A stretch of DNA of 64,000 bases. Origin: Monocercomonoides exilis PA203. Its lineage: Eukaryota > Protista > Preaxostyla. The notes under the pieces were generated by a model that was given only the letters and a program-made list of their open reading frames with translations, ran no database searches and was not told the origin of the DNA. Shown in pieces: positions 3,001 through 27,609 of this stretch; position 1 is the stretch's first letter; each line of letters starts with the position of its first letter. The translations under genes were made by a program, and so were the position numbers. The DNA lies in NCBI GenBank assembly GCA_001643675.2, contig LSRY02000005.1:1178001-1242000 (forward strand), written 5' to 3'.

Positions 3001-3166
3001 TTTGATAGTCATTTACGGGTGTTCATTGCACGATGAGAAAAAACAAATTCTTATTTTTTGGATATTAATATTTTAATTGTAGGATTGATCATATTGATTA
3101 TATTTTTTTATTTATTTTTTTTATGTTTTATTTCTCATGTTTTTATTATTAAAATAGGACAATATA
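1..3166. repeat. Long inverted repeat pair (1-119 / 3048-3166) flanking a pseudogene fragment; left arm cut by window edge
   Basis: The reverse complement of 1-119 matches 3048-3166 with one mismatch (aatcccacaa vs aatcctacaa). Weaker similarity continues inward to about 220 / 2950. Confidence 0.85.
651..2493 (+). pseudogene. Truncated, disrupted paralog of the receptor-like pseudokinase (end of ectodomain, TM, kinase C-lobe)
   Basis: ORF 713-1513 resembles the 2733-aa protein (SCVFDG, GGITVSGG, GYPSLRRNIICSD, SLKGGDG, TTSFILKN). A frameshift near 1510 leads into a TM segment, followed by in-frame stops at 1585, 1606 and 1960. 1969-2493 has RWMAPE and VFTLGLILHEMTTGEVP. No intact 5' part. 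Confidence 0.85.
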
Positions 3167-4647
3167 ATAAATAATGACCTTTCATCCACTTTACATTTCA
3201 TAATTATCTTGTTTTATTTATTTTTTGAAAAAATACTCATTTTTATGGGTGATTTTTAAAAATTGATTTTTCTCAAGGATCAAAATGAATCTCAAAATTC
3301 CAGTCCATACAAATGTTTTATTATTAAATATGCTTTGTATTTATCACAACGTTTTAAAAAATAACCAAGTATTGGGAATGTACCTTAAATACACCTATGC
3401 CATTTTTTTTCTTTCATCAAATGAAGCTGGTGTGAAAAAGTTTTACTTCTCATTTTCTTTTCTTCACTTTTTCATTTCTCAGCTCTTCTATTTTTCTTTG
3501 TCTTTCTTCTTTTTCTTTTTCCATCAAATATTCCTTCAATTTTATTGATTTGTGAAAGTCGAAACTCAACTGAATGAATGACTGGAAGAAAAATAGGACC
3601 ACCCAGATATTCTTCAAGGTTGTGTGTGGATTGTGCAACATCTTTTTTTTAATCCATTTTGTTCTTACAACAATAATCTGTATGAATTCCATTTTTCCAA
3701 GTCCCAAGCACAAAAGCAAGGTTTAATGTGTCAATAAAAATTAGTAAAAATGGAATGCTCAACTTTTTATTTCGGACTGACAGTACTGTCCCTAATGTTA
3801 TTTTTTTCAAATGATAAGAAAAATTGGTTGCTTCAGTTCTTGTCTGTTCTGATGATGAACAAACGTCAAAAAATACGCTTTCAAAGATAATTATCTTTTT
3901 TTCATTTTTGACAAGCAATTTTTTTGTTCAAGCATTTTTCAAAATAAGCAAATCTTTAAAAGACTGATGATGTTTTTATTCAATTTTCCCCTTTCAAAAA
4001 CTTATATTTATAACAACAAAAAATCACAAACTCAGAAGAAACAAATTTTAATGATTAAAAATCAATGGTGTTTGAAAAATTATGATTATAAAGCATATCA
4101 GAGATATCGTGCACAAATGAAAAAATTCAACATTCTGGAATTACACATATGGATGGAAAAACAGAACAAAAAAGATATAGCCAGAGGCAATTCTCACGAA
4201 GTGGTGTTTCAAACAGTAGCTGATATTTATAACTGAAAAGAAAAATCTGGTAAAACAACAATGAACGAAACAAAAAAGCTTTGAATGCGCTCAAAAGCAC
4301 AATTAACATAAAACTATAAAGTTGAATACACAGAAGAATATTTGACTCATTATAATTGATTTGCAATAACAGAAAAGATGAAATGCAAATGTATGAATGA
4401 ATAAAAAAAAGTCAATATAAAGATACAAACATTTGAATTACAAGTATTGGCGATACTCAAACCACGCACAATACATTTTCTAATACAGACAAATTCATTT
4501 TATCGATTTCCCACACAAACTCCTTCAGCCAGGACAACTCTTTAATTTCAATTTTCATTTCCCCAATTCGCAGTTCCCCAACAAACTCTTCTTCCCATCA
4601 CCCACATTCTCTTTCCAGGCAGCCACCTCCCATCCCACTCCACTGCT

Positions 4648-7600
4648 TCACGTTGCAAAGTCGATCGCATCTGACATCGTAATAACCACTGCCTCTTTCG
4701 GGAAGTGCTGAATGAACATCCTCTTCAGCTCAACAACACTCGGTCTGGCTTCGCTTTCCCCTGCCCAGCACCCCTCCACTGCTTCTGCAAGATCCGACTC
4801 CATCACACCATCCACACTCGGCCTCTCCCCATTCACAATCTTCTGCCCAGCCACCTCTGCCTCGTATTCTCCAAATGGGATTTGAAGGGTCAGACACTCC
4901 CACAGCATCATCCCGATCGAAAATGACACTGATTCTTTTGTTGCTCCCATCTTCTTGTTCATCTGCAGCTCTGGTGCCTTCCACCGCATGCACTCTTTTT
5001 TGTAATAATCATCATCCTCAAAAGCCGAAGAAGGCAGAGAGTTTCTATCATCATTATCATCACTGGCAGATGTGACAACAGTTGACGATGAAATGGATGA
5101 CGAGTCTGAATCATCATCTGACAATAAGTCAGAGTGCATCACAATACAAATCACCATGTGTTCGGAGAACAAAACTATGTGAGGACTCAGATTGGCAAGT
5201 GACTGAAGAGGATTTTGCATTTCATCAAACGAGTGGAGAGCAAGATTAGCCACCCAGAACAAGATTTGGGCAGCAGTCTGCTCCCTCTCCTTCAATGAGC
5301 CAATCGCCATCTCTTTCTTCTCATTCCTCCCATGAAGCAGCATAAACAGCGAATCCCTCAGATCCACAATCAGCTTTTCATGTGGTGATGAGCAGGCCAT
5401 TGCATCCACCAGATTCGACATCGATGAGGTGGTCGGACACATGCTCTCTGGTCGGATAAAAGTGGAATCTGAATCTGTTGTTGAAGTGGATGAGATGGAC
5501 GGTGATGGTGATCTCTTTCGAATCTCGTCTTCTTCAACCTTCTCTAATGCCCATTCAGGAATCTTATCAGAGTCTCTGCCCAATATATATTCAGTGGAGC
5601 CACTCTCAGATAGAAGGTACTCTTCAGACTCTGAATGAACCATCTCCTTTCCATTTATTCTTTTCTTCATCCTTTCTTCGTTTTTCTTTTCTGCCTCTTT
5701 CTCCGCTCTTCTCCACTGCGCCTCTGGTGACATCTCCATTGTAACCATCTCAATCAGTTTCGGATCCTTCTTCACTGTATCGTTCACAATTTCCTCCAAT
5801 TCTTCTGTTCTTCTCTCCGACTTTCTCCATCGAACAGCCAGAACAATTGACACAATCAAAACAATTAACAATATTACAACCAATAAAATAATCACAATCA
5901 ACGCCCATGACGATTTTCCTTCTTTTCCTCCTTCAACAATTCTTTCATCTCCATTTGCCTTAGGTTCACTTCTGTTCTTCAGAATGAATGAATCAGTTGA
6001 GGCTGGAGATTCAGACCTTCCAAATAAGATTTTCACAGACACTTCTGTTGCCTCAGACGCAGTTGTAACAATTGAGGCTGGAATGGCTGTGTGAATCTCT
6101 GTTTCACTTGCAAACTCTTCTGCTTGCAGCGGATACACCTGCAGATTGTGAACCGAGCCATCGAAGGAATCAACTTGGAGGGACAAGCCACAGGGCAGGA
6201 GCAAGGAGCCAGCAAGATCAATCGCAAGGTTACTGCCTTGCTGATGAGACTTCACTGAAGCCAGTTGCGGAATGAAGAATGGAGAGGCTCTTTCTGAAGC
6301 AATTCCAGAAAGATTACATCCCAAGTTCAAAACCCAAAGTGATGAGTTCTCTTTTAAGCCATCTCCGCCTTTCAGACTCTGAATGTTCAGCAGCGCATGG
6401 TCTGAACAGACGATGTTGTTCCTCATGGATGGATAGCCTGCTGCACTCGGGCTGTTGTTGGCAAACAATCCAAATTGCACAGAAAAGCTTCCACCTGACA
6501 CAGACAGCCCTCCTTTCGATGAGTTGGCAATGCTCGTGTCCATTATCCTTCCTGTGCAATTCTGAAGATCAACCATCGATCTGCTCCACTGGCACAACCC
6601 TTCTGATCGCTCATCGTTCGCTCTCAACTCTGGTGCGCTTGTTGCTCCGTCGAACACACACGAAGACATGCAAGCATCTGCCAAATCTGCCAACGCTGCA
6701 ATGCTCCCTTTTTCAGATGGCGAAGCACACTTTTTGTTCGAGCAGTTCTCCAATTCCAGCAACAAAGACGAAGACGAAGACGAAGACGAAGCAGCCAAGC
6801 AGCACGGGCCCAGCGAATCTCGGGTTATGTTTTGGAATGAAGGCTGCTTCAAATGGAATGCCGAAGCATTCGATGTCACGCTCACTGCGCACCCATCCCC
6901 AAGCACTGCGTTTGAAATAGCCAAGAAATTCATCTCAACATCTGAATCTTTACATTCGACAGAAACCAACGATTCACTTGAAACGCGAGTATCATCGAAT
7001 TCCAAATGAATGCCCTGGATGTTTGAATGCCCTCCCGAACCATCTGAGGAAAGCACAATCATGTTTGATCCGCTCCGAGTGCCTCTCATCTGAATGTTCT
7101 GAAGCTGGCAGTCTTTGCAGTTGCGAAGAATGAGGCCTGATCGCTGAGCGCTGCAATTGGATGCATGCACCTGCTGCATGGACAGCTTTGCCAGATCGTG
7201 GAAATCCATCAGCACTCCAGAAATAACATCTGTGAAATTCAGAAATGCACACGAGAAACATTGCCCACAACTTGCTGCCAGGCATGAAGAACTGAAACAG
7301 AGGCCAGCAAAAGTGCAGTCAGACATCGTCAATCTTCCACCGCTCATTTCAACAATCGAGCAATTCAGTTCAATTCCAGAGTTTCCACCAGAAGCTTCTT
7401 GAGCAAAGATTGTGTCTGCAATTGACAAGTTGCCATCAGCAAGCGATATTAAGCTGGAGTGAGAAGAAGAAAAAGCATTCCCAAACAGAATCGTCAGAAA
7501 CTCCACTTTGACTCTCGACGAGCACTCAGTGAGACTGCCCGTCTTGCACTCGATGCAGCAGTTCAGGTGGAGCACCCCTTTGTCGCTTTCCTGCTCCAGC

Positions 7601-10600
7601 GACTTGATCGTCACATCACGCGCACTTGCTTCGCCAGACACCAGGGCGCTTTTTTCGATGAGCAAATTGCTGTAAGCAGAGGGAATGATATGTGACAACG
7701 CAACATTCAACGAAGAACATGGACCGCTGATTGCGCCACACTGGCGCGTGTCAGAGGCGTTGTCAGCTGAAGAAGACGCAAATATTGTCTCGCTCTGATA
7801 CACAACAATCAGCTCCAACAAATCTTCCTCGTCATAATAATTCTGTGCTGTGCATCCCCACATCGCAAGATCCCGAACAAACGGAGGTCTGAAGTCGAGC
7901 TGGAAGAGCTCAATGCTGATTTGAGATTTGATATTTGTGCATCTCACATACAGGTCTCGTCCTGCGAGCGCCTTGTTGTTCATGAAAGTTGTGTTTTCCA
8001 AGAGAAACGGCAAAGGACCATCGCTTGTGATTGATGAGCAATCCAGGAATATTGCGCCTCCTCTTCCACTTTCTGAGCAGAAACACTCCGAGACAGCCGA
8101 AAAACGACACTCGAAAAAGCCTCCTTCGCTCAGGCTCATGATCATTCCTCCACCTTTCTCGCTTTCGCTGCTTCCACAGTTCTTCATCGATGTGTTTTGC
8201 ACAGACACGCTGCAAGGCTCGCTGCCAGTGCAGCTGATGATGGAGGGCTCAGATGGTGCATTTTGGAGAAGCGAATGGAGCGTGCAGCATTTCAGTTGCA
8301 CTGTTGGACTGCCACCTTCATTCAATCTCTGCGACTCTCCTCTCCTCTCAGCCTGCGCCAACACTGCAACAACGCTTTTGCCCATCAGTTCCATGTTGCT
8401 CATCGAGACATTCGTCAAGTCAATGTTGCTATCATGCGATGCCATCAGAATGTGACTTTTGCACTTAATAGATTGGAACGAGCAGAATGATATTTCGCAT
8501 GCTCCCGACAAGCAGGCAACAACACAATAAGGAATGGCTGCCTCAGAGGCGCTGGCAAACGAGCAGCTTTGAGCTGCAAAAGCGCTGCCAGCTGTGCTTA
8601 TCAGCTTCGTCTGCTTCCATTCAGATCCATCCCCGCAGCAGATCTCAATGTTAATGAAGGAACATTTCCCATTGTTTGTTAGTACAAAATCGCTTTCTTC
8701 TTCCTTTCCTGCCTGAGGTGAGATGGCTGCTCCAAAAGTCAGGGCAGGACGAGACTTGGCGTCAACTGAAGTCACAGTGATGTTTGAAATGTCGACCTCG
8801 CTGTTCACCTGTGCTTCATCAACTATCAGAAAAGTGTTCATGGGAGGTTGCGCTGGCTCTTCCAAAGCACGGAAATGGTTCTGCCCAAACTCCATTGTTG
8901 CACACGGCTCTTCTGCACTCCCACACCGCAGAACATCCCACCCGCTGTTCTTGCTGAGATGGATTTCTTGAGAAGCAAATCCAATCAGAAATCGGCAAAG
9001 ATCGAAGATTGTCTTCGTGGAGTCGTTCCCCACAAACAGATTTTTATCTCCCGCTGTCTCGCTGACTTCAAATGCCAATGTCTGCTTTGTGATGGAAACA
9101 TTCAGGTCTGACGAAAGAAAGAACATGTTTTTCCCGTACTTTGCAGAGCACTGATCGAATGCTATCTGATGGAAGGAGAATGCATTGGAAGCCGAGCAGT
9201 CGAAATAGACCCCTCCTCCTTTTCCACCTGTTTCATTTTCAGCGCAGCATTTCGTGAATGTGGCGTTTTCCATCCTAAATTGCCCTTGTGCTTCAACAAC
9301 AACTTTCATCGCGCCTCCCTCCATGCTCTCAGCGCCTTTGGCATTCGTGACATTCCAATGCAAACACTCAACCTGGCTCGAAATTAAGGACGAAATCAAC
9401 ACTGCGCTGTTTGCATTGCCATTTGTTATCCCTTCAAAAGAGCATTGCGAAAGAGAGATAACCTCGTCACTCGTCGCACCATCATTCAATAGTTTGGATG
9501 GTGATGATGGTATCACATGAATCAGAGGATAATCGCAAAGGATAAATCCATTCACTTTCAGCGAGATAACTGTCGGAGCAGCAGCGCCATTCTCGCTCAC
9601 CGCAATAGGTGCTTGGCAGAGGCAACCTGAATCAATTTGGCAGTCATCAATATTGAGTATCCCTCCGCACATCTGAAACAGCCAATAACTTATCTGGCTG
9701 GACTCTCCCATTTGCACCCCAAATGCACACTTTGTCAGCGACAGGTTGCTCTCAGAAGTCAAGAACATCAAAGTTTCTATCTCAGAATCGAACGAAGATG
9801 GTAGCAAAAAGTGGATTAATTCAACAGATACATTCCCCGTGGCTGCAATCACTTTTCCACTCACAGCATTCAGCGACTTGAAACAGGTTACTCCAGCTCG
9901 CAAATCATCTGATGATTTCAAGCTCACGCTGTGCAGATTCATTTCGCTTTTGAATGTTACTGATTTTACGATAGCTATTGCCTTTGCACTCACCTCTTCC
10001 AGTCTTTCCATGCAATAGTCAACCGATTGGCACGGATAATCCGAGAACCCACATACCACAGTATCAGCTCCATCCTCGCTTCCCACATGGACTGTGCTTC
10101 CAACTTCCTCCAGAAACAGAACCAACGGAATTGAATGCTCGTGATCATTTCCATGGAACCCGCACAAATCATCAAAGCAGCTATGACCCAGTGCATAAGC
10201 AAAAGGAAGCGTTTCGTTCGTGATCGATTCTCTTAGATCTGGAGATTGAACAAACAAGTTGTTTCCATGCTTCGCTTTGTTTGGCTTTCCTGACGAAAAA
10301 GAAGGAGCTGTGATGGCAAATGCTGCATCCGAGTGCTCAAGATTCAGAAAGATCCCTCCCCCGAATCCAACCTGCGAATCGAAAGGCGCCTCGCATTCTT
10401 CGAAGGAGCATTCCGAAACTGTTGCTGAGCATGTGTTTGGCAGCGACAGGAACAGCGCCCCACCTCCATTCCCATCACCAGAAACAACACAATGCTCAAA
10501 AGTGCATCCGCTTATTGAAGCACCGCAGCCATCCTCAAACCCTTCGCTCCACACTGCTTTCAGGCATCCGCCATTCTGCTCGCTCTCAACATCCCAGAAT

Positions 10601-12849
10601 GAAGCATTGGCTAAAGAGATAGTTTTGCAATCTGACAAAGCAATTGCACAGCCTTGCGAAAATCCAAATCCAGTGACATTCACAAATTCCATCATTAAAG
10701 AGCCTTCTTCAACCTGAATCAGGGATTTTGTTGATGGCTGAGTCGATTGGTCGCTTTTGGTGAAACTGCACAGCTCCAACTGAACTGAGCCTGAGGAGCT
10801 GACTGCAATCGCAGTTCGATTGAACACACAAACAAATTGAATCCTCTTTGCATTCAGTGAACCATTGCCGATGGAGATCAAGCAGTCATTTGACGAGGCT
10901 TCGTTGCACTTTATTGCAGTTGAGTTGTTCTCTGTTCCGCTGAGAATGATATTTCTCCAGTCGATGTCAATCACGCCTTCTTCGATTTCTTCGCCAGACA
11001 TCAAAACATTCTGCCCCAAATATGAATTCCATCTTGTCACTCCATATTCCACCGTTTGGCATTCCGAGCCTGTTCCTCCACAAGTGTCCACATTTCTACC
11101 AGAATTGCTGATGTGTATTTCTGGCTGAGCTGTTGGCAGATATGAGTCATGTGCAACAGCTCTATCTCCGCATATCCTTGCATATTCGACGCATTGCACA
11201 ACTTTTCTTGGAGCTGTTGAAAGTGTAAAACTTTGCAATATCTGAACTGTGTTATTATCCAAGCTAAATCCCTTTCCAATAAAAATATCTGCTGCATGTG
11301 TCGATTTATTCACTGTATTGTTCTCAAACAAGCAAAATTGGATTTTGACGTTTTTGTTGTGATCATTATCGGAAACATCAAATCCTCCTGCTCCCAGTGG
11401 AGCATCTCCATTTAATAAATAACAATTTGACAACACAAAATCAACTTTAGGATATTGTAGAAATACAGTTCCAGCATAACATTTTAATGCTCTGCTTCTT
11501 TTGAATACAGTGTTGTAAATTGATCCACTTCCTCCAATATACCATCCGACACTTCCTCCATAAGCTGCTGAAGAATTTTCAAAAATGCAGCCAATTATCA
11601 GAGAAAATTTATTAGTAATATGAGCAAATGCTCCTCCGATAGACTGATCTCCCGTTCCTTTGCAACAATTAAATATTGAATTTTCAATGAAGCAGTCGCT
11701 TCCATTGCTAAAAATTGCACCCCCATATCCATATTGATCATAGTATGTATCAATGCATTCGGAAAATGTGCATCTGTCAACAGTGAGCTTGGCACTTTCG
11801 CTGACAGCTATTGCTCCACCATGAGAGGCACTGCATTTTGTAAAAGTGCAATCTTCAAATTTGATTTCTCCATCTGAAAATGATTGTGCTTCATTCGTGA
11901 AGTTCTGATGAGAAATGGTGTTTCTCGAACGAATGAAAGAAGTGTTCCAGGAGCCAAAACCACATCCACGAGAGCCAGAAATGAGAACACCATAAAACGG
12001 GCAAACACAATCAGCGACCATGCAGCCTTCCATTTTGCTTTCCTGCAAAGAATGCTTTTGCAGTGGATGCTTGCTGCTGCTCTTAACAGAAATGTTGTGG
12101 AAGCTGCAAAAAGAAGCTGAGGCAAATGACAAATCCACATCTCCAATGAACGGATTCACAAACGAGGCACAAAACGATGAAAATGTGCAGCACGAAACAT
12201 GAACACTTCCCGTCAAAGGTTGTGCGCAGGAACTTGCTGAGACAAGAGATGGCCATGCCTGCTTCCGAAAAGTCCTTTGGAATGAAATATTCGTCATTCT
12301 TATCGTTCCTTCTCCACAGTCAAAAGGAGATAATTCCGTCTCTGTCACCACGCTTATGATGCAATCGCTTACAGATAATGTGGACAATTCATTTCTCACA
12401 AAAATGGCAGACGTGCATCTTTGGTCAATTTTTATTCGTTTAACGACCAATGACGAGTTCAGAACCATCATCCTGCTGCAAATCCAGCTCCACTCATTCT
12501 TGCCATCATTGAATGCATCTGTAACAGAGTTATGATCAAATTCCCTTTCTGCATCCACCAGCAATCGTTTTGAGTTTTTTTCTGTATTTGTCAACCAGCC
12601 AGATGAATCCAAATCCTGCAGCTCATTAAACTTCATCACATTGATTGAATTCATACTGTGCGAGGAGGGCACATTTTTGTTTGTTGCGCAGATGCTTTCG
12701 AGCCTTCCAATGCCATATTTCTGCAAATCGATCTTTTTGAATGCATCTCCTTTCCAAGCGGTATCTCCTGTGCATAGCAAAGCAGAAATAATTATAAAGA
12801 CACTAATACTCGCGAAAAGCATTGGTCTTGCCCTTCCTCTGAAACACAA
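4648..12849 (-). CDS. Large single-pass receptor-like protein: signal peptide, Pmp/pectin-lyase-like beta-helix repeats, TM, cytoplasmic kinase-like (probable pseudokinase) domain
   Basis: 2733-aa uninterrupted ORF. Hydrophobic N-terminus (MLFASISVFIIISALLC). About 10 GG(A/G)(I/L/V) motifs with FxxC spacing and 4 CGxxxx(P/E)C modules. TM WALIVIILLVVILLIVLIVSIVLAV followed by RWRK. C-terminal MRWKAPE, SFSIGMMLWECLT and RPS motifs. Confidence 0.9.
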   Translation of the reverse strand: MCFRGRARPMLFASISVFIIISALLCTGDTAWKGDAFKKIDLQKYGIGRLESICATNKNVPSSHSMNSINVMKFNELQDLDSSGWLTNTEKNSKRLLVDAEREFDHNSVTDAFNDGKNEWSWICSRMMVLNSSLVVKRIKIDQRCTSAIFVRNELSTLSVSDCIISVVTETELSPFDCGEGTIRMTNISFQRTFRKQAWPSLVSASSCAQPLTGSVHVSCCTFSSFCASFVNPFIGDVDLSFASASFCSFHNISVKSSSKHPLQKHSLQESKMEGCMVADCVCPFYGVLISGSRGCGFGSWNTSFIRSRNTISHQNFTNEAQSFSDGEIKFEDCTFTKCSASHGGAIAVSESAKLTVDRCTFSECIDTYYDQYGYGGAIFSNGSDCFIENSIFNCCKGTGDQSIGGAFAHITNKFSLIIGCIFENSSAAYGGSVGWYIGGSGSIYNTVFKRSRALKCYAGTVFLQYPKVDFVLSNCYLLNGDAPLGAGGFDVSDNDHNKNVKIQFCLFENNTVNKSTHAADIFIGKGFSLDNNTVQILQSFTLSTAPRKVVQCVEYARICGDRAVAHDSYLPTAQPEIHISNSGRNVDTCGGTGSECQTVEYGVTRWNSYLGQNVLMSGEEIEEGVIDIDWRNIILSGTENNSTAIKCNEASSNDCLISIGNGSLNAKRIQFVCVFNRTAIAVSSSGSVQLELCSFTKSDQSTQPSTKSLIQVEEGSLMMEFVNVTGFGFSQGCAIALSDCKTISLANASFWDVESEQNGGCLKAVWSEGFEDGCGASISGCTFEHCVVSGDGNGGGALFLSLPNTCSATVSECSFEECEAPFDSQVGFGGGIFLNLEHSDAAFAITAPSFSSGKPNKAKHGNNLFVQSPDLRESITNETLPFAYALGHSCFDDLCGFHGNDHEHSIPLVLFLEEVGSTVHVGSEDGADTVVCGFSDYPCQSVDYCMERLEEVSAKAIAIVKSVTFKSEMNLHSVSLKSSDDLRAGVTCFKSLNAVSGKVIAATGNVSVELIHFLLPSSFDSEIETLMFLTSESNLSLTKCAFGVQMGESSQISYWLFQMCGGILNIDDCQIDSGCLCQAPIAVSENGAAAPTVISLKVNGFILCDYPLIHVIPSSPSKLLNDGATSDEVISLSQCSFEGITNGNANSAVLISSLISSQVECLHWNVTNAKGAESMEGGAMKVVVEAQGQFRMENATFTKCCAENETGGKGGGVYFDCSASNAFSFHQIAFDQCSAKYGKNMFFLSSDLNVSITKQTLAFEVSETAGDKNLFVGNDSTKTIFDLCRFLIGFASQEIHLSKNSGWDVLRCGSAEEPCATMEFGQNHFRALEEPAQPPMNTFLIVDEAQVNSEVDISNITVTSVDAKSRPALTFGAAISPQAGKEEESDFVLTNNGKCSFINIEICCGDGSEWKQTKLISTAGSAFAAQSCSFASASEAAIPYCVVACLSGACEISFCSFQSIKCKSHILMASHDSNIDLTNVSMSNMELMGKSVVAVLAQAERRGESQRLNEGGSPTVQLKCCTLHSLLQNAPSEPSIISCTGSEPCSVSVQNTSMKNCGSSESEKGGGMIMSLSEGGFFECRFSAVSECFCSESGRGGAIFLDCSSITSDGPLPFLLENTTFMNNKALAGRDLYVRCTNIKSQISIELFQLDFRPPFVRDLAMWGCTAQNYYDEEDLLELIVVYQSETIFASSSADNASDTRQCGAISGPCSSLNVALSHIIPSAYSNLLIEKSALVSGEASARDVTIKSLEQESDKGVLHLNCCIECKTGSLTECSSRVKVEFLTILFGNAFSSSHSSLISLADGNLSIADTIFAQEASGGNSGIELNCSIVEMSGGRLTMSDCTFAGLCFSSSCLAASCGQCFSCAFLNFTDVISGVLMDFHDLAKLSMQQVHASNCSAQRSGLILRNCKDCQLQNIQMRGTRSGSNMIVLSSDGSGGHSNIQGIHLEFDDTRVSSESLVSVECKDSDVEMNFLAISNAVLGDGCAVSVTSNASAFHLKQPSFQNITRDSLGPCCLAASSSSSSSSLLLELENCSNKKCASPSEKGSIAALADLADACMSSCVFDGATSAPELRANDERSEGLCQWSRSMVDLQNCTGRIMDTSIANSSKGGLSVSGGSFSVQFGLFANNSPSAAGYPSMRNNIVCSDHALLNIQSLKGGDGLKENSSLWVLNLGCNLSGIASERASPFFIPQLASVKSHQQGSNLAIDLAGSLLLPCGLSLQVDSFDGSVHNLQVYPLQAEEFASETEIHTAIPASIVTTASEATEVSVKILFGRSESPASTDSFILKNRSEPKANGDERIVEGGKEGKSSWALIVIILLVVILLIVLIVSIVLAVRWRKSERRTEELEEIVNDTVKKDPKLIEMVTMEMSPEAQWRRAEKEAEKKNEERMKKRINGKEMVHSESEEYLLSESGSTEYILGRDSDKIPEWALEKVEEDEIRKRSPSPSISSTSTTDSDSTFIRPESMCPTTSSMSNLVDAMACSSPHEKLIVDLRDSLFMLLHGRNEKKEMAIGSLKEREQTAAQILFWVANLALHSFDEMQNPLQSLANLSPHIVLFSEHMVICIVMHSDLLSDDDSDSSSISSSTVVTSASDDNDDRNSLPSSAFEDDDYYKKECMRWKAPELQMNKKMGATKESVSFSIGMMLWECLTLQIPFGEYEAEVAGQKIVNGERPSVDGVMESDLAEAVEGCWAGESEARPSVVELKRMFIQHFPKEAVVITMSDAIDFAT

Positions 12850-13630: not shown

Positions 13631-16600
13631 ATGTCAGGAACAGACGATGAACGAAGATCAATTGGGGGATCTTCAGTTAGTTCTATATCTACAGGAGCGC
13701 TCGGAGTTGTGAAGTTCAGTACAATTGATGAATGGTTTGTATTTTCTATTTATTATGTTTTTGTAAGTTGCAGGCCTTTTATTTTTCTGTATCCTCACAA
13801 AAATCAGGATTTTTAATATTTTTTATCAATATCATAAGGTTTTTAACAGTCATACATTCGTATATATTTGCTAAATTGCTAAATATTTATTAACAGGAAG
13901 TACCAATTTCAAATACGTTTTGGATCATTTCATCTGTTGTTATGCTACTCCAATGGATCGGACTTAGTTACCGCACTTGCTGTTTCCCAGTGATTCCTGC
14001 AGTGGATCAATATCTTCGTGATTTTTTTCGATATCTTGATTTTTCTATTTGTTGGAGCTCGTTTCCTTTCAAACTTGTAACGTCCATACTGTTTTATTTA
14101 CTCATGCTTTTTGATGTGATTGTTTATTTTTTTATCCGGGTCTTTTCAAAGCATGAGTGGGATATTCTTGATACGATGAAACGGCTGCTTTTTGTGTACA
14201 AAATGAATCTTTCTACAATATTTTTTATTCCTATAATGAACATCACAATGGGATCATGGCTATGCATTTTTGCTGGAAGCAAAGAAAACTGCGAAACCGG
14301 AGACATTTTGCTTGTTGTTTTCTCTTCAATTTTTTTCATATTGTTCACAATTATAAAACTATTCTTCAGATCATTTATCCATTCAATGAACATCTCTCGC
14401 AATCACATATTTAGCTGTCAATCCGGATCTTTTTTCCCAATACAGTACATATTATTAATTATTTTGACACTCATAGCTGCAGTGATGGATCAGCTGAAAT
14501 CAAAAGGAATGGCAGTGGGAACAATTGGACTAATAATCTTTTTGATACTCACAGCTGCGTCTGTGATAAGACAGCCGTTCTTTACCATCCTCTCTAACCA
14601 GCTCATTTCCGCAACCAGCGGTGTCGCGGCCTTGTTTTTCCTGCTTGAGATCATCGTGTCAGTAGCTCTCCCGCCAGCAAGCTTCACACCCTCAATCTGC
14701 TCCACTGTAGTGTTCTTGGCTGTCTCAGTCATCCTCGCTGCAGGCGTGTGGCTGGGCCTGTGGGTGCTCACGCGGAAGGTGGGGATGTCGATGTGGGCGA
14801 TGCGGCCTGGAGAAGAGGTGCCTTCTTTCCAGGCGAAGAAGGCGAAGAACAAACACAGCACTGCAGACACAGGACGAGGAGACCGCGAGCCGCTGCTGCA
14901 GAAAGGAGCACCAGAGGCAAGCTTCTCTCCCACGCTGGGCGGAGCAGCAACGACTCCTTCAGTGCAATTTCCCGCTTCTTCTTCTTCAGCGTTTTCTACT
15001 GGCTTTAATAACACAAATGATCCTCTGCTTGCCGCTTCTTCTTCTTCTGCTTCTGCTTCTTCTGCCTCTGCTCTGTCACTCACAAACAGTTCGAATTCCC
15101 TCATGCCTATGCAGCAGCAGCCAGCAGCAATATCAACAGCAATGACTTCTTCTTCTTCTTCTCTTTCATCAACAGCCCTCTCTCTCTCACCCACCTCTGC
15201 CTGCTCCTCAACCCCTCTCCCAGTCATCCAGCCGCCCGAGATGCGCTCCTCCACATCGCCCACCCTCGGCTCTCCTCTTCTGATGGGCTCTCCTCCGCCC
15301 CATGTGGTGCCTTCCACGCCATTCCACATGCCTCCCCAGCAGCAGGCTGTCTTGTCCCCTCGCTATCCTTCCACTCCGCACGGACAGCCTCCTCAATCTT
15401 CTGCGTCTTTAGCTTCAACGATGTCTTCTTCACTGTCAACGTCATCATCATCATCATCATCTTCTTCTTCTTCTTCTTCTTCTTCTTCTGCCTCCTCTTC
15501 TTCCTCTTCTTCCTCTTCCTCTCCATCCAAAACAGGCTCTGGATCCTCGAACGCAATTCCTTGCCAGCTGCCAAAGTACAGCAGTCCCCACGAGATTCAG
15601 TGCGCTATCCGCTTTTTGACTGACCGCGAGCTGCACAAACGGCCAGAGTGTGTGAAGCTGGGCGAGGACATTGTGAAATACGGCACACGCAAGTTCAACA
15701 GCTCGCCGACGATGTGGATCACATCAGCGATGTTTCACCTGAACTTCACAAAGGACGGAAACCGGATGGGCGAGAACCTGCGCAATGCGAAGCAGTGTCT
15801 GCCTTCTGTTGGAGAGCGCTGGGTCATCTACTCTCTTTTGAGCGACCTCGAAGCGAATCGCGGCTCGTTGTTTGGGTCGAAGTGTGCTGGTGTCTTTGGC
15901 GGCGGGATCACATTCAGCAGCGGGCGGAACAAAGGACGGCTGGCTGGGCTGGGGTGGAGCAGCGGAGGAGGCGCGGGGAGTGCGAGGGGAAGAGGAGAAG
16001 GCGGAAGCTTCCAGTCGTCAGCGGCGCTGAGGATCGGCCTGGCGAACGCTCAGAAGCACACTGAGGTGGCGAAGGCGTATCTGAAGCAGGTGTGGACGCT
16101 GATGGTGAAGGAGAACCTTGATGTGCAGAAGATCATGCGCTATCTGGAGAAAGCGGTGGAGGCGCGGCAGGCAGCAGACATCGAGTTCACGGGGCTGCTC
16201 ACGACGAATGCGAATTCGCCCCAAGTGCTGCGTGCGTATGGGATCATGCTGCGGGATGTGGACAGGGACGACGAGACAGCAGAGACGATGTTTATGAACG
16301 CGAACCAGCTCGAAGAGGATGAGACGGCCACAGTCAGTGATGGAGAGAGCGGGTCGATCCGCAGCGGGTTCAGCGAAGGCTCAGACGGGTTTGGGAAAGG
16401 CGGGGTGGGGATTGGAGGGGGAGGAGGAGGAGGGCTGGGAGGGTTGGGCGGGATGGGAGGAGGCGGAGGAGGAATGGGAGGAGGAAGCGGAGGCAGTATC
16501 GACGGGAGCAAAGCCGGGAGTTCGATCAAACGGCGGTCGCTGAAGCTGGGGAAGCGGAAGAAGAAGAACAAGAAGTCGCAGAAGGCGCTGACGATCCACC

Positions 16601-19600
16601 TGAGCCAGACGAAGCGGAACATCCTGCCGTACTTCCATGGGCTGATCATTGCGTGTGTGGTGGTGGCGCTGGTGGCTGTCTCTGTGATGTTTGCTTTGCA
16701 GAACGTGTCGATGTCGAAGAGCAGCAACACGATCGAGATGATCAACACACTCGCCCTGCTGGAGCTGTCCTTCTACGACACAGTGATGTTGCAAATGTAC
16801 CAGTACTACATCGAGAACGGCTTCTCCCACGCCGACTACCAAATGATCCCCGAACACGAGCGCTTCCACATGCTGCTGCACGAGCTGGTGGAGCAGATGG
16901 GGGAGAACCTGAACTCGGCGTATGTGCACACCGAAGACGACTCCGTGTTCGACTTGTACGAGTTCGAGCGGTACCAGCTGGTGTTCATCCAGCGGGACGA
17001 CAACCAGAACATGGTGAAGGTGATTGGGAAGCCGATCAACGTGATCGACATGGTGAAGACGGCGACGAACCAGGTGTATGACATCCTGGGCGAGTCGGGG
17101 GATGTGGATCCTGTTCTGTACATCGCCCTCAGCGACCTCATCTTCGCAACGGTTCCTGTGTTCGGGGTGGACTCGCTGAAGCAGGTGCAGCTGCAGTATG
17201 TGAAGGAGAACAGGAGGCTGGAGCAGCTGGTGCACATTGTGAACACGATTGTGGGGTCTGTGGCGATTGTGTCTGTGATCGGCATTCTGATCATTCAGTA
17301 CTTGATCACCACGATGCACTTGCTCAAGGAGAGGCGCAGGGCGATGACTTCGTTCTTTTCTGCACCCAAAAAACGCATTTTGAAGTTGAAGAAGCGGCTG
17401 GAGGACGCCGAGAGGGATGCAGCAGAGCTCGACGAGGACGATCCGTATTCGCAGATGATGGCGATCAACTTGCAGAACATTGATGGAGTGGCGATGGATG
17501 GGTCACTGGGAAACAGAGGCAATGAAAGCTCGACAGAGTCTGAGCAGAAGCTGGCTGCATTCTCACCGTCGAGAACACACAACTACTCTCGTTCGTTTCC
17601 CAGAAGCACTTCAAAGGGATCGCTGAATGAATTCAGGGGAGGTGTGAAATTTTTTCAATTTGTGAATCTTTTCTTAATTTTTTATTTATTTATTTGTTTA
17701 TTTTGTTGTAACAACTTATTCTTTATTACACTTGAATTCGCGTTCAATTCTTATTTCTTGTTATTCATAGTCCGCCCACAAGATACAGACCACAGTGCAA
17801 TGTATCGCGTGAATTCAAAGATGTCTATTTTGTACAACGCCGAAAATACAGCTAATCAGCCGAGCACTTCAGACTTGATAGAAAAAGATGTCATCGACAA
17901 TCCAGAAATAAATGGCAAGCAACCAGAAAACACTCAAATTAACACAAACGATGGCAGCACCAGCAGCTTCGAAAAGCAATCACCTGATTCTTCACAAGAC
18001 ACCAAGCCAGACAGCAGCGAACGGCCGAACACGAGTCTGACAGAAGGCAACGAGCCATCTCCAGCTTTATCTCATCAACAGCAGCAGCAGCAACAACAAC
18101 AACAACAACAGGCAATTTCAGTGGCATCCACTGCTCCTCTGTTGCAGTACTCTCAAGTGCAGTCTCCACAGCCTGTGCCTTCGATGCGCAGAGCACATTC
18201 AAACACCTCCTTCCAGCCGAAAGTCGACCCCACGTGGAGCACTTACACCAACTCCTCTCTGTTGCTCCCGCCTTCTTCTTCGCCACAAGCTGCAAATGCG
18301 ACAGCGTCATCATCAACTTCAGCAGCAGCACAGCAGGCGAACAACAACCGCCCTGCCACCTCTTCCTCTTCCATCATCTCATCCTCCCCCACTCCTTCCC
18401 AAATGCCCCAGTCGCTGTACATGTTCACTCCACACAGCCAGCTCCAGTATGCTCCCTGGGGACCCATCATCTCTGTCCCGTATGCCGACGGCTCGTCGCA
18501 GAGCTTCTATCCGATGCCTTCTCCCATCCTAAACGATCCAGGGACAGTCACACAGACAAGCCCGACTCCTTCGCCTGTGCCTGTCTCTATGTCGATGTCG
18601 ATGTCTGCATCTATGCCAGGAGGACAGGGAATGAGTGGGAACACCACACCTGGGATCATGGGGCAGGTCAGCTTGTCAGGTTCTGCTTCTCCAGTGCACT
18701 TCAGCCCGTACAATCTGTATGCAATGTCTCCGCAGCCTTTGCAGAACGGCAATGGTTCTGCATCGTCTTCTTCATCTTCAGCAAGCACTTCCCTCACACC
18801 GCTTCAGCAACAACAGCAGCAGCAGCAACAGCAGATGATGATGATGATGAACCCGACACACGTAAGAGAGCAGTCTATGTCTTCGACTTCGCCTCTTCTC
18901 CAGCGCCAGGGGGATAACAGCGATGCGTCCAGCTCCTATCCACCAGCCTCTCTAAGACCGACGTCTGTGCCGCCTGCTTCTTCACAGCCACCTTCCCAGT
19001 CACCTGCACCACAACAGCGGCAGCAGTCGTTCATTTCTCCGTCTGCTTCACAGCAGCTCAGTGCGACTGGGTCTGTGACTGATTTAAGGGCGGAGACAAA
19101 TGCTCCAGCGAAGAAAGAGGCAGCAGGAGGAGGAGGGGGAGGAAGTGGTGGTGGTAGCGGTGGAGGAGGAGAGAAGAAAGCAGAAGAGCTGACACTGGAA
19201 GAGCAGGAGGAAGACCAAAGGGCAGAGATAGAGGAGAAAGTGAAGAAGATCAGCGGGATAATTCCCACTTTGTTCTACGTGAGGACGTTTCTGGGTGTGG
19301 CGCTTCTGATGGGCTTTGCCATCGCCTTTGCCATTGTGCTGAACAGAACATTGTCGCAGGCGGTGGAGATCGATTCACTAATCTGCTTCTCTCAGTACCG
19401 CACAGTGCAGTTGGGGATCATGACGCTCCTTTCGATCAACATTGCTGACCCGGATGTGTTGGATACATCGCCAACGGGTGTGCCGATGATCACGAATGAG
19501 CTGTCGACGTATCCTGTCTGGAACGACCAGCGGCACATGTCGAGCGACTGCGACACGGTGAAGCTGATTCTGAACAGGACGATCCAGTTCTTCGACGCTT

Positions 19601-20838
19601 TACACAGGAAAGTGAAAGAAGGAGGCAAAGTGGGCACACGGGAGTTCATTCTGACAGGAGATGATGCCATCGATGAAACATCCACCTCGCGCACGATCTA
19701 CTCTGGCTCGCGTCTGTCCGCGCTGATGATGAACTCCCAGGCGTGCTATGAGTACTATCCAGGTGACTGCGACATACCTGACAGAATCTACAACCACAGA
19801 GGCGACTTTGCGGGGCTGGAAGGGCTCATCCAGGAGTTCCTGTCGCAGGCGCTGGCACTCACCAACACGTCGTCACAGCCGCCGATGAGCCACACGTCGG
19901 TGCAGTTTATGAACACAGCAATGAATTATGACCTCCGCGCAGGCATGAACAACTACTCGACGATCATGGTGCAAGAGTTTATGGAGAAGACAAACAGCAA
20001 CTTTGTGGGGATGGTGGTGCTGTTCGTGTTCACTGTGATCTTCATGCTCGTGGCATTCTTCCTCTGCCTCATCCCCACCCGCGACACGCTCTTCAAAGTG
20101 GCCCTGTGCACCATCAAGATTGCTGACCTCGACCCGTCTGCCGCGTCTTCGCACGATGCCATTGCCGAGTGGAGCGAAGAATACTCGTGTGACGTGCAGC
20201 GCTTTGACGACGCACACAAACGTGTTGTGGATGCACTGCGTGAGCTTGTCCAGGGCATCGAGGAGATGGAAGACGGCGGGTTTGGCACGAAGGAAGGAGG
20301 GGAAGCGGGGCAGGGCGCAGGAAGCAGTGGCAGTAGTGGTAGTGGAGGAGGAGGAGGAGGGATGGAAGGCGACGAGTTCGAAGACAGCGATTTGCAGAAC
20401 CGTAAGCGGCTGAAGCAGCTTCTGCGGGCGTTTGTGTTTGGGTTCTTCCGTGTCCTGTCAGACGAGGAGAAGATGATGTCACGTGCAAAAGTGTCGAACT
20501 ACCACATCAATGCGCACAAGCGGGAGCACATCACGTTCATCAAGCGTGTGCTGCAGTCTTCGCTGCGCATTGCTGTGTCGAAGGTGATTGAGGCAGGCAC
20601 GGGGGAGATAACAGAGCTGACACAGACGGTGAATATGTGGATGTCTGACCACATGACACACACAGACAGAGAACTGGGCACGCTTCTGGTGGGGAAGACG
20701 AGCCAGGGGAGGCTGGAGAAGATCATCGACCTCACTGTGTGGGAGGTACCGCCGTCGTATGTGGCTTTCCTTGACTCCGACAACGCTGACCTGAAAAGCA
20801 GAGAGCAGATTGAGAACTTACAAAGAATGCTTGAATGA
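13631..20838 (+). CDS. Multi-pass membrane protein of TmcB/TmcC-like architecture with C-terminal hemerythrin-like domain
   Basis: Main ORF 13942-20838. Probable first exon from ATG 13631 (5' structure uncertain) and in-frame intron 17642-17770. About 7-8 N-terminal TM segments, a TPR-like block (KFNSSPTMWITSAMF...NSPQVLRAYG..L.DV..D.E.AE..F), two TM-loop-TM modules, then WSEEYSCDVQRFDDAHK...DEEKMM...HKREH...WMSDHMTHTD. Confidence 0.85.
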
Positions 20839-20867
20839 TTAAGAGGAGGGAGAGGGGAATGCTCGAG

Positions 20868-22365: not shown

Positions 22366-25300
22366 ATGCGAATTCAACCCATTATTGAAAGGTGTTATAC
22401 ATTAGATCTTTCCAATCGAATTGAAAGAAATAGAATGAGCTTCATGAGAAGAGAGTTTTGGCAGACTTCGAAAACAGCATCAGCAAATATTTCAACATGC
22501 AAAACACATGTCAAAGATTTATTAAAATCAATTGCTGAAAGATATTCTTTCAAAGGATCTGTTGTTGCGTTGGTGTTTTCCGAAGAAGGTCAAATATTTT
22601 TGAAAAGGTGGTTTGATGAGTTGTGCTCGCCATCAAGTTTCATGCACATTGCTATCTTTCGAACAATTTGCTTCCAACTTTGCCCCGAAATTCGTGAAAG
22701 TCAAATTAATGCTCTCTTTGGAGAAATTAGTGTGTTTTCAATGCTATCCTTTAATGACATTGTAAACACATGAATTTCTCCATCTTCTTTATTCTCTTTT
22801 TTAGGTTACGGAAACATTGGAACAAAAGCTAAGCACAGAATAGTGAAGTTTCCTGCAATGTTATGCATGTTAAAGATGTGGGCAGCAAAAGAAATAGGAA
22901 TATTGAAGCATTGCTTGTTTGTTTATTTTCCGCATTAAATTTCTCATGTTTTTAATGCTTGTAAAACTCTTTTTTGTGATTGAAATTGTCAATGATTTCA
23001 AATGGATAAATTTGTGCGTCTTTCAACAAATGAAAACAATGAATATAGGTGTATTGCTTCGGATTCCATCATTTATTGCATTGGTAGACTTGAAAATTTT
23101 GATAGCATTTCAAAATTAACTTCGAAAATTGTTGAGAAACATCAAAATGCGAAAATCACTCCATTGATCTTCGCTTTCGAAAATATTGAACTTGTAGCGT
23201 CTTCTTCTATTGACCCACAAACATTTATTTGCGAAAATAGAAGCCCTTCACAAAGTGCGGAAAATGATGATCCTGAAAAGATCTTCATCAAGACACTACA
23301 AACAGCCAAAAGTGGAATCGTTTCAGATAAGTTAGGTCAATCCTCGCATAATTTGCACAAGATTTCAAAATTGCCTCTGGAAGCTTCTTTTGAACAAAAT
23401 AAATGCAAAACTGAATGCAATATTTTCGAAAAAGTTGTATTGAGATTTACTGTTGATTGCAGAACAAAACAAAAAATACAAGATGGAAAGTGTGTGAGAT
23501 TACCATCTCAAGTTGCATTATTCAGGCATTTCACTACGCTTGCAAATCTGCTAATTTGGGATACGGCTTCTGTGATCCAGACTGTAGAACCATTAATACT
23601 CCCTTTGAAACAATTGAGTTTTGGATCTTCTTGTGAAACCTACGATCAAGAGAAATGCGTTAACTCTCTTCTTGAAGGCAGAAAAAATAGAACAAAATTG
23701 AGTATGGGTGTAAGAATTAAAGAACAAAATGATATTTTCAAAACACCGAAGCAAAATGAGCATGTTGGAGGAGATGAAAATTTTTGTTTAAATGATATAG
23801 AATCATCTTCAAGCACATTTAAAGGAGGAGGATATATAACATCAAAGCAGCGATGGAACATTAAATTACCAAAGAAAGACTTAAGTAGTTCAGAACGTAA
23901 ATTGGAGGACTCAACATTAAAAACAAATAATTTCAAAAATTTCGGATTTTCATCGGGAAACGATAAGGTTACAACATCATTTTCTTCACAAAAAGACCAG
24001 CAAGGAAAGTGCATGACAAATGAAAATCTTTCGTGTTTTGAAGAAGGAGAAACAATTTATTTTAAAAATCCAGGACTTGATTGCAGAAAATCAGATGATT
24101 GTTCTGAAGAATGTGAAGAACATCGAATACTATCAAAAAGATGTTTGGATCAAAAAATTACTGTTCCATTTTCTAATGATGGGAAAAAATTATCAAATGA
24201 AGCAAATGCAAATTCGGATCATACGATAAAACGAAATAAATCTCTCATGGACCGTATTAATGAAGTGGGAAAATCTCCATCTCAGCCTTCACTTTGCTCA
24301 ATTTCGTTGAACATCAGAGAAGATCAGTCAGAAAAACGTAAAGACTCAGAGGAAGCTACAACTTACACATTGCCAAGAATATCAATTTCTTCGCCATCGT
24401 CTGATTCATATAAAGAAGAAGTTGGTGATCATCTTGGAGATCTTGAAAGCTATTTACCAAAAAAGAAATCAGATACGAAAATGGACAGTTCATTGTTTGA
24501 ATTAAATTCTCTTGCAGATCGTCAACTTTCTTTGTCAAATACACTTTGTGAAAAAGGCATTTCTTCTTCTGAAACGAAACGGATCAACGAAATCATGATT
24601 AAATATTATTCTCCTTTTTGTTATTCAAACGAAATGACGAGATATTTTTCTTGTTCTCATAAAATGTATTGTCATTACTCATCTGTCATAAGAAAGTGCT
24701 ACTCAATTCTTCTGAAATCCTCCATGTCATCACATATAGATATTTCAATGCTTATTCAATTGGATGAAAAAGATTCTGCAAAAAGAGATGATTCTGTGCA
24801 ATATTTGAGTATGAAAGGCGAAAGTGCTGGAATGGAGTTCAAAGAAATTCATACAGATGATAAGACTTCAGATACAGAGAAGCTTCGATTTTTCAAGGAG
24901 AATCACTCAACAAATTCAAAGAAGGATTTTGATGAAACAGGTTCGTCGCATTCAAATTCCTCTACTCCACGTGCTTTTGAAGAACTTTCATATTTGAGTG
25001 CAAATTCATTTGGAAAAGTTGGTATTGCGAAGCAACCGATATCAAATACAAACAATATTCCAAGCAGATTTTGCTCCTCGAAGGAAGAAGTGGAGAAGCT
25101 TATTTCAATACCAAAGGATTCAATTATACCGAACGAAACTTCTCATAATCATTTCGACAAGCATGAAAATCAAAGTGAAAGACAAGGAAACATCAAAAAG
25201 AAACAAAAGATTCAAACAAGAACCTCAAACAAAAGTTTTGGCAATCAGCAAGAGAAGAAGTTGTTGTCAAGTCATCGTTTGAATTCATTATCAGATTCAT

Positions 25301-27609
25301 CACTGCCAAAATTTTCTCCAGTCTCAGATTCTTCTTTGCAAAAGGAAGCAGGCCTTTCTTCGAACAAATCATTCTCACATCCTATCAATTCATCAAGACC
25401 TCAAGTCCTTGCATCAATTTCGCATGACCCCTTACACCAATCACAATTCACATCTTTATGTACACCTGATAAATCATCCGGTTCGTTTCATAACAGCAAT
25501 TCTGAGAAGACAACTGAGCCCACTGAAAATTTCAACGATAAACTGATTTCGAACATCTCTGAGATTAGATTGAGACCTTTTATTCCGTCTTGTCGCAAAA
25601 TGGAGGATGAAGAAAAATCTTCATGCACACTTGATATTCCTGCGTTGACTGACAGAACTGCACCAATTGTTGCACAGAATAAATTGGTTACGGAACATAA
25701 TTCAGATACACGGAAATACTCAACATTTGATGAGAAAGAATCTTCAGATCATTCTGATAGAAAGTTAAAAGATGATATCATGCCTTCTTCTTTTTTGAAG
25801 TTAATTAATTCTCCTAAAAATGAAACTTACAAGCGAAAATCACTGTCTCCTCCACAAGCATCGTTGGATTCATCTCTATCAGAGTCTTCCTCTTCTTCCT
25901 CTTCTCCGTCTTATGCTTCTTTGTCTTCAACCTCCACTTCAACAGTTCCATCAAGCTCTTTATCATCTCCTTCTTCCTCATCTTTGACTCCAATTTCCTT
26001 CTCCTCTTCGAACACGTCTTGCATTTCTCATCATTGTCACCACCGCCATCGAAACCGTTGCAATTACTATCACCGTAAAAAACACTATCATCTTCATCTT
26101 CATCATAGTCATTCAAAACGGAAGCACAAACATGAACATGCAGACCACTCATTGAGAAGCCATAATTTGATCCACCAAATCAAAACTTCATCATATCCAT
26201 CAACAACTTTTCGAACTCCGCACGTTTCCAAAAGGCTAATAAGTCATGACAAGAATGAAAAGCGATTCAAAACTTTGAATGATTCACAGATTTCTGAAAA
26301 AGAAGAAAGTTCTGAGAATACCACTCAGAAGATAAGCTCTGAGATTGTGAATGTTCCACCAGCAGGAGGATCAAATGCTTTTCAAATTGAATCACATGGA
26401 TGCTTTAAGAGTGCTATGCAATCATCGCATTTGAATATGCAATCACCTACTTTGAGTGGAGGAACGCGAATGATTCGCTCGGCTTCATTTGATGCAAGTT
26501 CAAAAACGATTTCACACTCACAACGTGATTATTGCTTGCCTCTTGATCATTCCCCATATGTTCGGAATTCTCAAACTCAGTTTCAATTGCATCCGTTATT
26601 GTCTTCTTCACATTTTTCTTCTTCATCTTTTTTGCCTTCAACTTCGACTCTATCTTCACCATTATCGACTGTAAATGTCCCCATTAATGCACAGCTTAAT
26701 CATTCTCCTTTGCCTCCTCTTCCTCCTCCTTCGCGACAAAGAACTTTTAGCCTTTCATCACCATCAAACAAGCAGCTTCTACAACTCTCGCAAAAGCATT
26801 TTGAAAACCAGAGGGATTCAGTGACTTCTCTGCCGAATATGCTTTCCATCGACTCATTTGTATCTCATCCAAATTCGTATGGATTCCAATCCAATTGCAA
26901 TAGCAGTAGTATTTCAATCATTCCACAGCATTCATCTCCTGAAACATCAAGCTCCGTGGACCATTGCTCCTTCAAATCGCAATTGAATATATTACCTTCT
27001 TCAAACACCTCGTCAGTCTTTGAGCAAATGGATGCAGAAAAATGTTCTTCAGATGCTTCTTTTGAAGAATTTCAACACAAGGACAATCTTTGTTCCAATT
27101 CTGCTCTTAAGATACCAAACAATGAAAGTGAAGATTGCCCTATTTCTGAGTTTGGTCAAAATCAAACAAGTTTACAGCGTTCAAAAAAGAATGAAATGAA
27201 AAAGCCACAAACTGGCATTCAAAATTTCAGTTTTGAATTTCCATCCTTGGATTCGAAGTTGCCTCCATCGTCTTCTGATTTTAAAGCAACCTCGTTTCCG
27301 TTAACAGCAATGCATCCTTTTCAAATGAAGAAAACTCATATGATTTTTAAATCACCATATTCTGAAAGTGCTTCAACTATTTATCCTTCCTACGAAGAAA
27401 CCGATGCAGTAGGATCTTCAGATTATTCAATTTTGAAAGATGACAAAAAAAGTTTTCTCGAAGAAAAGAAAAGAAGTGATTCCAGCGTGGAATTGACTTC
27501 TCCATATACACCAATTCTAACTCAAAAAAAACCACATGAACCAACTGCAATTGAAGATCAAATATCTGGTGACTTATTTGATTTGACTCAAGATGAGGGT
27601 AGCTTTTAA
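22366..27609 (+). CDS. Hypothetical Ser-rich protein with His-rich tract; possible degenerate EF-hand-like N-terminus
   Basis: Long ORF 23002-27609 (1535 aa). Upstream exons can be joined in frame via GT-AG introns 22730-22804 and 22917-23048. C-terminal two thirds are low complexity. Confidence 0.6.

Follow-up and report, generated by a model that had tools for sequence, protein, structure and literature searches.

A TmcB-type receptor-like membrane protein of Monocercomonoides exilis with a predicted C-terminal hemerythrin fold and an apparently altered metal site

DcrH, a methyl-accepting chemotaxis protein (MCP) of Desulfovibrio vulgaris, carries a C-terminal, cytosolic bacteriohemerythrin-type bundle on a membrane receptor (PDB 2avk, 3whn), and uncharacterised bacterial-type proteins that match our hemerythrin (Hr) profile combine a PilJ-type sensor, a HAMP linker, an MCP signalling domain and tandem Hr domains. 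In animals, FBXL5 (PDB 3v5x) is an iron- and oxygen-dependent stability switch, in which a eukaryotic Hr fold serves regulation and not O2 carriage. Large multi-pass membrane proteins with a TPR_TmcB domain (PF25474) are represented by TmcB/TmcC of Dictyostelium, and passages citing earlier work in PMC8516963 and PMC12750705 give Dictyostelium TmcB a reported role in the cAMP signalling of sexual development. Little is known of how anaerobic or microaerophilic protists sense oxygen, oxidants or iron, and the gut protist Monocercomonoides exilis moreover lacks mitochondria. Here we describe a gene of M. exilis PA203 (13631-20838, + strand) that joins a TmcB-type membrane body to an Hr domain lacking one of the canonical iron ligands. 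It lies in the window, by which we mean the whole stretch of DNA analysed, 64,000 nt of contig LSRY02000005.1 (positions 1,178,001 to 1,242,000, forward strand; assembly GCA_001643675.2). In our judgement the chances are about even that this domain is a cytosolic metal- or redox-responsive switch on a membrane receptor and not a classical O2 binder.

The M. exilis protein resembles DcrH in its predicted cytosolic C-terminal bundle. Unlike DcrH, it has neither an MCP signalling domain nor HAMP, the Hr domain following directly on the last membrane helix; its body is of the eukaryotic TmcB type with about 12 helices, an iron-2 His is missing, and a tail of about 48 aa is added. It shares with the Dictyostelium proteins a TPR_TmcB domain on a large multi-pass membrane protein, a likeness drawn from the domain match. 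FBXL5, our preferred working model for a eukaryotic Hr fold used as a regulatory switch, was found among the weaker Foldseek matches, much weaker than DcrH-Hr; its ligand set and lineage differ, and the M. exilis protein has no F-box or leucine-rich repeats.

To the C-terminal region we assign two features:

20158-20691 (+), Hr domain, from family scans, PDB profile comparison, an AlphaFold2 (AF2) model and structural alignment
20692-20838 (+), conserved C-terminal tail (about 48 aa) and stop codon, from the paralogue alignment

Residues are numbered along the open reading frame, with the Met at 13942 as residue 1; searches and structure predictions took pieces of the genomic window, and exons were joined solely for counting codons. 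The excised C-terminal 224 aa scored 26.4 bits against PF01814 (cut-off 25.3) and 53.4 bits against TIGR02481 (cut-off 51.75). When a profile of 21 paralogous C-termini was compared with the PDB, DcrH-Hr was retrieved first (E 5e-14), followed by Methylococcus-type bacteriohemerythrin and myohemerythrin. The AF2 model of the domain (predicted local distance difference test, pLDDT, 86.6; predicted template modelling score, pTM, 0.82) contains four long helices at model positions 21-45, 80-116, 121-147 and 155-187, the first two separated by a disordered Gly/Ser insert. Alignment of this model with DcrH-Hr (3whn) by VIA-align gave Z 14.4 and a root-mean-square deviation (rmsd) of 2.1 Å over 132 of 133 residues, and every hemerythrin entry ranked above generic helical bundles. 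Judged by the model and the profiles, the C-terminal domain is a genuine hemerythrin fold, an up-down four-helix bundle, as the preliminary description of this locus had supposed. The domain starts about 28 residues after membrane helix 12. The tail behind it, with invariant P2270 and S2279 and an 'SDNA' motif, is conserved in 21 of 21 aligned paralogues and is modelled as short helices (pLDDT 90-97) packed beside the bundle; it was found in oxymonad members and is absent from those Paratrimastix members that were looked up.

The canonical ligands of the hemerythrin site are H-H-E-H-H-H-D. The corresponding residues here are H2092, V2171, E2175, H2192, H2196, H2237 and D2242 (HVEHHHD), so that six of the seven are present and Val (codon GTC, 20452-20454) stands where DcrH has His. 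In hemerythrin, the three later His hold iron 1, Glu and Asp bridge the two irons, and the first two His hold iron 2; O2 binds at iron 2, which is held by His25/His54. With V2171 replacing the second iron-2 His (His2), this copy keeps the iron-1 ligands and the bridges and one iron-2 His only. Among 85 receptor-type domains, the genome's own paralogues included, 15 retain the full set, most lack His2 and a subset lacks both iron-2 His; the window gene belongs to the most numerous site class counted. Of 95 domains taken from proteins with Hr only or from bacterial-type signalling proteins, 81 have the full set. The 45 receptor-type domains without His2 show 100% conservation of the six remaining ligands, an argument for selection acting to keep a metal site. 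The His2 position itself varies in this class (V, A, S, T, C, G, M, N), no new ligand-capable residue is conserved among the 45 domains, and constraint is relaxed at the pocket positions that intact receptors and bacterial Hr domains conserve, namely two Phe, the Tyr-Pro motif and the Phe that follows His2. From these patterns we read the site as a retained but altered metal site, not the classical O2-binding one.

The widespread loss of ligands also bears on the idea of a metal-free structural module, in which the Hr fold would be a scaffold for dimerisation or docking and the extracellular loops would do the sensing. Retention of all seven ligands in so few receptor-type domains fits such a scaffold, as do the packing of the conserved tail beside the bundle and the likeness of the second of the loops (loop 2, below) to a ligand-binding domain. 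The invariance of six ligands in domains that share about 20-35% identity is hard to explain without a metal site, and we regard this alternative as unlikely.

The preliminary description had put forward O2 sensing in the manner of DcrH. A classical sensor of this kind would bind O2 reversibly at its di-iron site, as DcrH-Hr does, and report oxygen. DcrH-Hr is indeed the best match of the domain in sequence and structure, six of seven ligands are in place, sister paralogues carry the full HHEHHHD set, and O2 is a relevant signal for a microaerophile or anaerobe (PMC6759080). The likeness to DcrH-Hr thus stands; the function proposed from it is weakened for this copy by V2171 and the relaxed pocket. 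By the established assignment the missing ligand belongs to the very iron that binds O2, the adjacent Phe and other pocket residues are lost in the clade as well, and no compensating ligand is conserved, so that a classical O2 sensor appears distinctly unlikely here. Paralogues such as those at C25:555 kb, C11:1342 kb, C50:69 kb and C35:289 kb (contig number and position) share the architecture and tail at 20-30% identity and, unlike the window gene, retain the seven ligands together with the His-Phe and Tyr-Pro residues of the pocket; on their sequences they are better candidates for true O2 binding. Three further intact-site Hr receptor tails lie on the window's own contig, at C47:119076-119636 (L040), C47:470887-471447 (L038) and C47:218864-219421. 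The Hr regions of L038 and L040 hardly differ, L038 lies in a frame of 522 aa only, and the third copy has an in-frame TAG; the three look like recent duplicates, two of them decaying.

To define the extent of the family, the M. exilis genome (82.3 Mb, 101 contigs) was scanned. The TPR_TmcB profile matched at 69 places, a loop 2 profile at about 66 loci and TIGR02481 at 58 places, every one of the last lying either in a frame of 1689-3496 aa or in what is plainly a fragment. No stand-alone hemerythrin gene was seen among these 58 matches, the short frames being family fragments, some with in-frame stops. Comparison of the coordinates by eye gave roughly 55 TmcB-type genes with a detectable Hr domain and about nine with loop 2 and no Hr. 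On these counts the window gene has its place among some 55-65 paralogues. A profile run exhaustively against 1.84 billion representatives retrieved 129 proteins at E <= 1e-30. The loop 2-bearing matches whose origin was looked up all come from Monocercomonoides, Blattamonas, Streblomastix or Paratrimastix, and the family thus spans four Preaxostyla genera; automatic database names of the relatives include 'putative hemerythrin' and 'TmcB/TmcC TPR repeats domain-containing protein'. The notion of a singular novel system, which the preliminary description had favoured, must therefore be given up. Its surmise that the architecture is undescribed held, for no paper describing it was found in the searchable literature. 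With every M. exilis Hr domain on a large family of receptor-like membrane proteins, the family is a concrete and testable candidate for sensing. It also forms a natural series, from intact sites through those short of one His, such as the window gene, to those that have lost both, and could show what the hemerythrin fold does once the O2-binding iron is dismantled.

Two published statements bear on the family. The tmcB family was stated to be present in Carpediemonas and absent in all other sampled metamonads (PMC8516963); contrary to this, TPR_TmcB has the 69 matches in the M. exilis genome counted above and is present in proteins of Blattamonas and Paratrimastix as well. Hemerythrin is listed in the 2019 genome paper on M. 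exilis (PMC6759080) among the oxygen-stress genes, with a bacterial origin; in the searchable literature this paper alone mentions hemerythrin in Preaxostyla, and neither a Preaxostyla genomics paper nor the Oxford Nanopore (ONT) assembly paper (PMC8767320) does so. That listing among oxygen-stress genes, together with the high copy number (58 matches), would suit a membrane-tethered defence against oxygen or oxidants, along the lines suggested there for hemerythrin, in which the domains scavenge or buffer O2 or protect Fe-S proteins and the membrane part is an anchor. A receptor-like body of about 2000 aa, with TPR and sensor-like loops conserved across genera, is hardly to be expected of a mere anchor, and most copies have an incomplete site for the O2-binding iron; we consider such a role very unlikely.

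In a quick maximum-likelihood tree, the window gene pairs with the gene at C26:1158 kb (Shimodaira-Hasegawa-like approximate likelihood-ratio test, SH-aLRT, 97), and both fall within a 25-row clade (SH-aLRT 99) that includes Blattamonas genes and in which every member lacks His2. This indicates that the loss of His2 in the clade predates the split of Monocercomonoides and Blattamonas and is old and maintained. Over the whole tree the His2 state changes at least three times. The best Hr matches outside Preaxostyla have bacterial-type domain sets with C-terminal tandem Hr domains, one of them PilJ-HAMP-MCP-Hr-Hr; as the source of the Hr domain, such proteins are only a lead from sequence comparison. 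Descent of the entire loop 2 and Hr module from a DcrH-like bacterial receptor was likewise considered and kept as a lead only, as loop 2 shows no sequence similarity to bacterial sensors and its look-alikes in the Atlas are eukaryotic.

Two gene models in this family deserve comment. P0013 of Blattamonas nauphoetae (3353 aa, 'putative hemerythrin') contains two complete loop 2 and Hr modules (1239-1666 and 2934-3297) and is probably two tandem genes merged in one model. P0049 of Paratrimastix pyriformis (L046) combines loop 2 and Hr with a protein kinase and was rejected as evidence for kinase output. Its model consists of about 20 short exons over 7.3 kb, with a predicted intron of roughly 500 nt and an odd linker before the Met at which the kinase starts, suggesting that annotation probably merged two neighbouring genes.

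The gene and the remaining parts of the protein are laid out as follows:

13631-13762 (+), inferred exon 1: ATG at 13631, 44 codons, start of the first hydrophobic segment; predicted from sequence alone
13763-13896 (+), inferred intron 1: 134 nt, GTAAGT..AACAG, AT-rich; predicted on the same basis
13897-14760 (+), N-terminal multi-pass block of about 7-8 helices, by hydropathy
15553-16341 (+), TPR-like block, predicted cytosolic, with the Pfam TPR_TmcB core at 16039-16326
16642-17292 (+), helix 9, loop 1 (about 180 aa, presumed extracytoplasmic) and helix 10, by hydropathy
17642-17770 (+), intron 2: 129 nt, in frame, no stop, 21% GC, GT..AG; absent from RNA
19285-20073 (+), helix 11, loop 2 (about 225 aa, resembling four-helix-bundle sensors) and helix 12, by AF2 and hydropathy

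The segment 13942-20838 (+) is a single stop-free open frame of 2298 aa, and GC content is about 50% in the coding part and about 30% in the flanks. The donor GTAAGT at 13763 and the acceptor AG at 13895-96 would join the predicted exon 1 in phase 0 to the frame at 13897, which fits the gene start at 13631 given earlier. The second intron was identified from RNA: one RNA contig in each of four of four runs (one study) skips exactly 17642-17770, the shorter side being 255 letters. The spliced product amounts to 2314 codons (local count after joining exons). A hydrophobic stretch at aa 1237-1277 had suggested two extra membrane helices and was rejected as such, being the unspliced reading of intron 2. 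One RNA contig per run contains 18860-20859 unchanged, that is helix 11, loop 2, helix 12, the Hr domain and the stop codon plus 21 nt; this places the Hr domain on one transcript with the receptor, from which splicing does not remove it. We treat 13631-20838 (+) as a single gene.

Hydropathy gives about 12 membrane helices after removal of the intron artefact. The N-terminal peaks lie at aa 49-67, 93-111, 122-140, 164-182, 191-209, 228-246 and 255-273, plus one upstream, and four later helices at aa 901-919, 1099-1117, 1782-1800 and 2026-2044. Neither Pfam nor PDB profiles nor the Atlas assign the N-terminal block to a known family; its reading as a transporter or channel of known type was rejected, no PDB profile match being better than E 0.1, and the sole Atlas lead is to fungal TRP-like proteins (0.87). 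TPR_TmcB matches at aa 700-795 (E 1.8e-13, 50.9 bits against a cut-off of 27), and this block is kept in 18 of 21 aligned paralogues. A Pfam scan of the whole protein detected no PAS, cyclase, kinase or MCP domain, PF00015 (MCP signalling) having no match at E <= 1, and a HAMP linker after the membrane helix reached no more than 13.4 bits (E 0.1, cut-off 25). The arrangement outlined in the preliminary description, a multi-pass N-terminus, a TPR-like block, two membrane-bounded loops and an Hr domain right after the last membrane helix without PAS or cyclase, was thus recovered by hydropathy, Pfam and the family scans. Lys/Arg clusters occur before helix 9 and after helix 10, on what would be their cytosolic flanks. 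The positive-inside rule predicts a cytosolic location for the TPR block, for the C-terminus and for the long middle rich in Ser, Pro and Gln, and an outside location for the two loops.

Loop 2 was examined by structure prediction. The AF2 model of helix 11, loop 2 and helix 12 (55 homologues; pLDDT 95.1, pTM 0.87) is a helical bundle whose first and last helices run on into the membrane. A fold search of about 48,000 PDB representatives, independent of Foldseek, placed periplasmic four-helix-bundle sensor domains in all of the top eight positions (Z 9.9-12.6), led by the PilJ ligand-binding domain (12.6), McpN (11.7) and the NarQ sensor with its membrane helices (11.0); the others were the Vc1313 ligand-binding domain, PcaY, a sensor-kinase periplasmic domain, MCP2201 and QseE. 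Atlas features gave a weak PilJ lead (0.88), the nearest look-alike clusters being eukaryotic and unnamed. A near-invariant cysteine pair, C1935/C1943, and three N-x-S/T sites, at N1878, N1975 and N2004, fit an outside location of this loop. Loop 1 as a duplicate of loop 2 is unsupported (hhalign probability 14%).

On the reading we prefer, the protein would be a roughly 12-pass TmcB-type receptor-like protein of the plasma membrane or an endomembrane, with loop 2 outside as a four-helix bundle of the type that bacteria use as periplasmic ligand-binding domains and the last loop 2 helix continuing through helix 12 to the cytosolic Hr domain. The Hr domain would still bind metal, its modified site holding either a single iron or, besides the first, an open second iron that is weakly bound. 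Iron supply, oxidation or small oxidants (O2, H2O2, NO) would then change the conformation at this site, in place of reversible O2 carriage. Since enzymatic output domains are absent, the readout would be a change in partner binding or in stability, relayed through the conserved tail, the TPR block and the disordered regions in the cytosol.

Several points tell against this reading. With one ligand gone, a hemerythrin may be unable to hold the second iron, or may hold no iron at all. The whole protein scores under the family cut-offs (PF01814 18.9 bits, TIGR02481 42.5 bits), which the excised domain alone passes. The inside/outside assignment has hydropathy and charge bias as its sole basis. 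Loop 2 has no Pfam or PDB sequence-profile match to known sensor families, and Z values of 11-14 are common among unrelated helical bundles, so that its likeness is at the level of fold only and our claim for it is one of fold and topology, not of homology.

A bolder version would make the His2-less clade a new functional class, a one-metal or labile-second-iron switch older than the Monocercomonoides-Blattamonas split and joined by one membrane helix to an extracellular ligand-binding bundle. Such proteins would be two-input receptors, for a ligand outside and iron or redox state inside, without enzymatic output, and the family of about 60 genes would be the main oxygen, redox and iron sensing apparatus of these mitochondrion-less eukaryotes; taken as a whole, this is a tentative proposal that we think unlikely to hold.

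Some features of the neighbourhood were also recorded. The adjoining open frame, 4648-12849 (-), has 2733 aa, ends in a fragment of a Tyr/Ser-Thr kinase domain (PF07714, aa 2617-2710, E 8e-9) and could be a member of the large kinase family that PMC8767320 mentions. Downstream, the 1535-aa frame at 23002-27609 (+) has no Pfam match at E <= 0.01. Adjacent frames of 1115 and 344 aa at 50227-54621 (-) contain P-type ATPase pieces (Cation_ATPase and a weak E1-E2_ATPase match) and are probably the parts of a single gene that an intron or a change of frame divides. Within the giant frame 55616-62953, the segment 58001-60000 shows extreme GC skew (-0.65) and an AT skew of -0.29, probably reflecting a low-complexity coding repeat.

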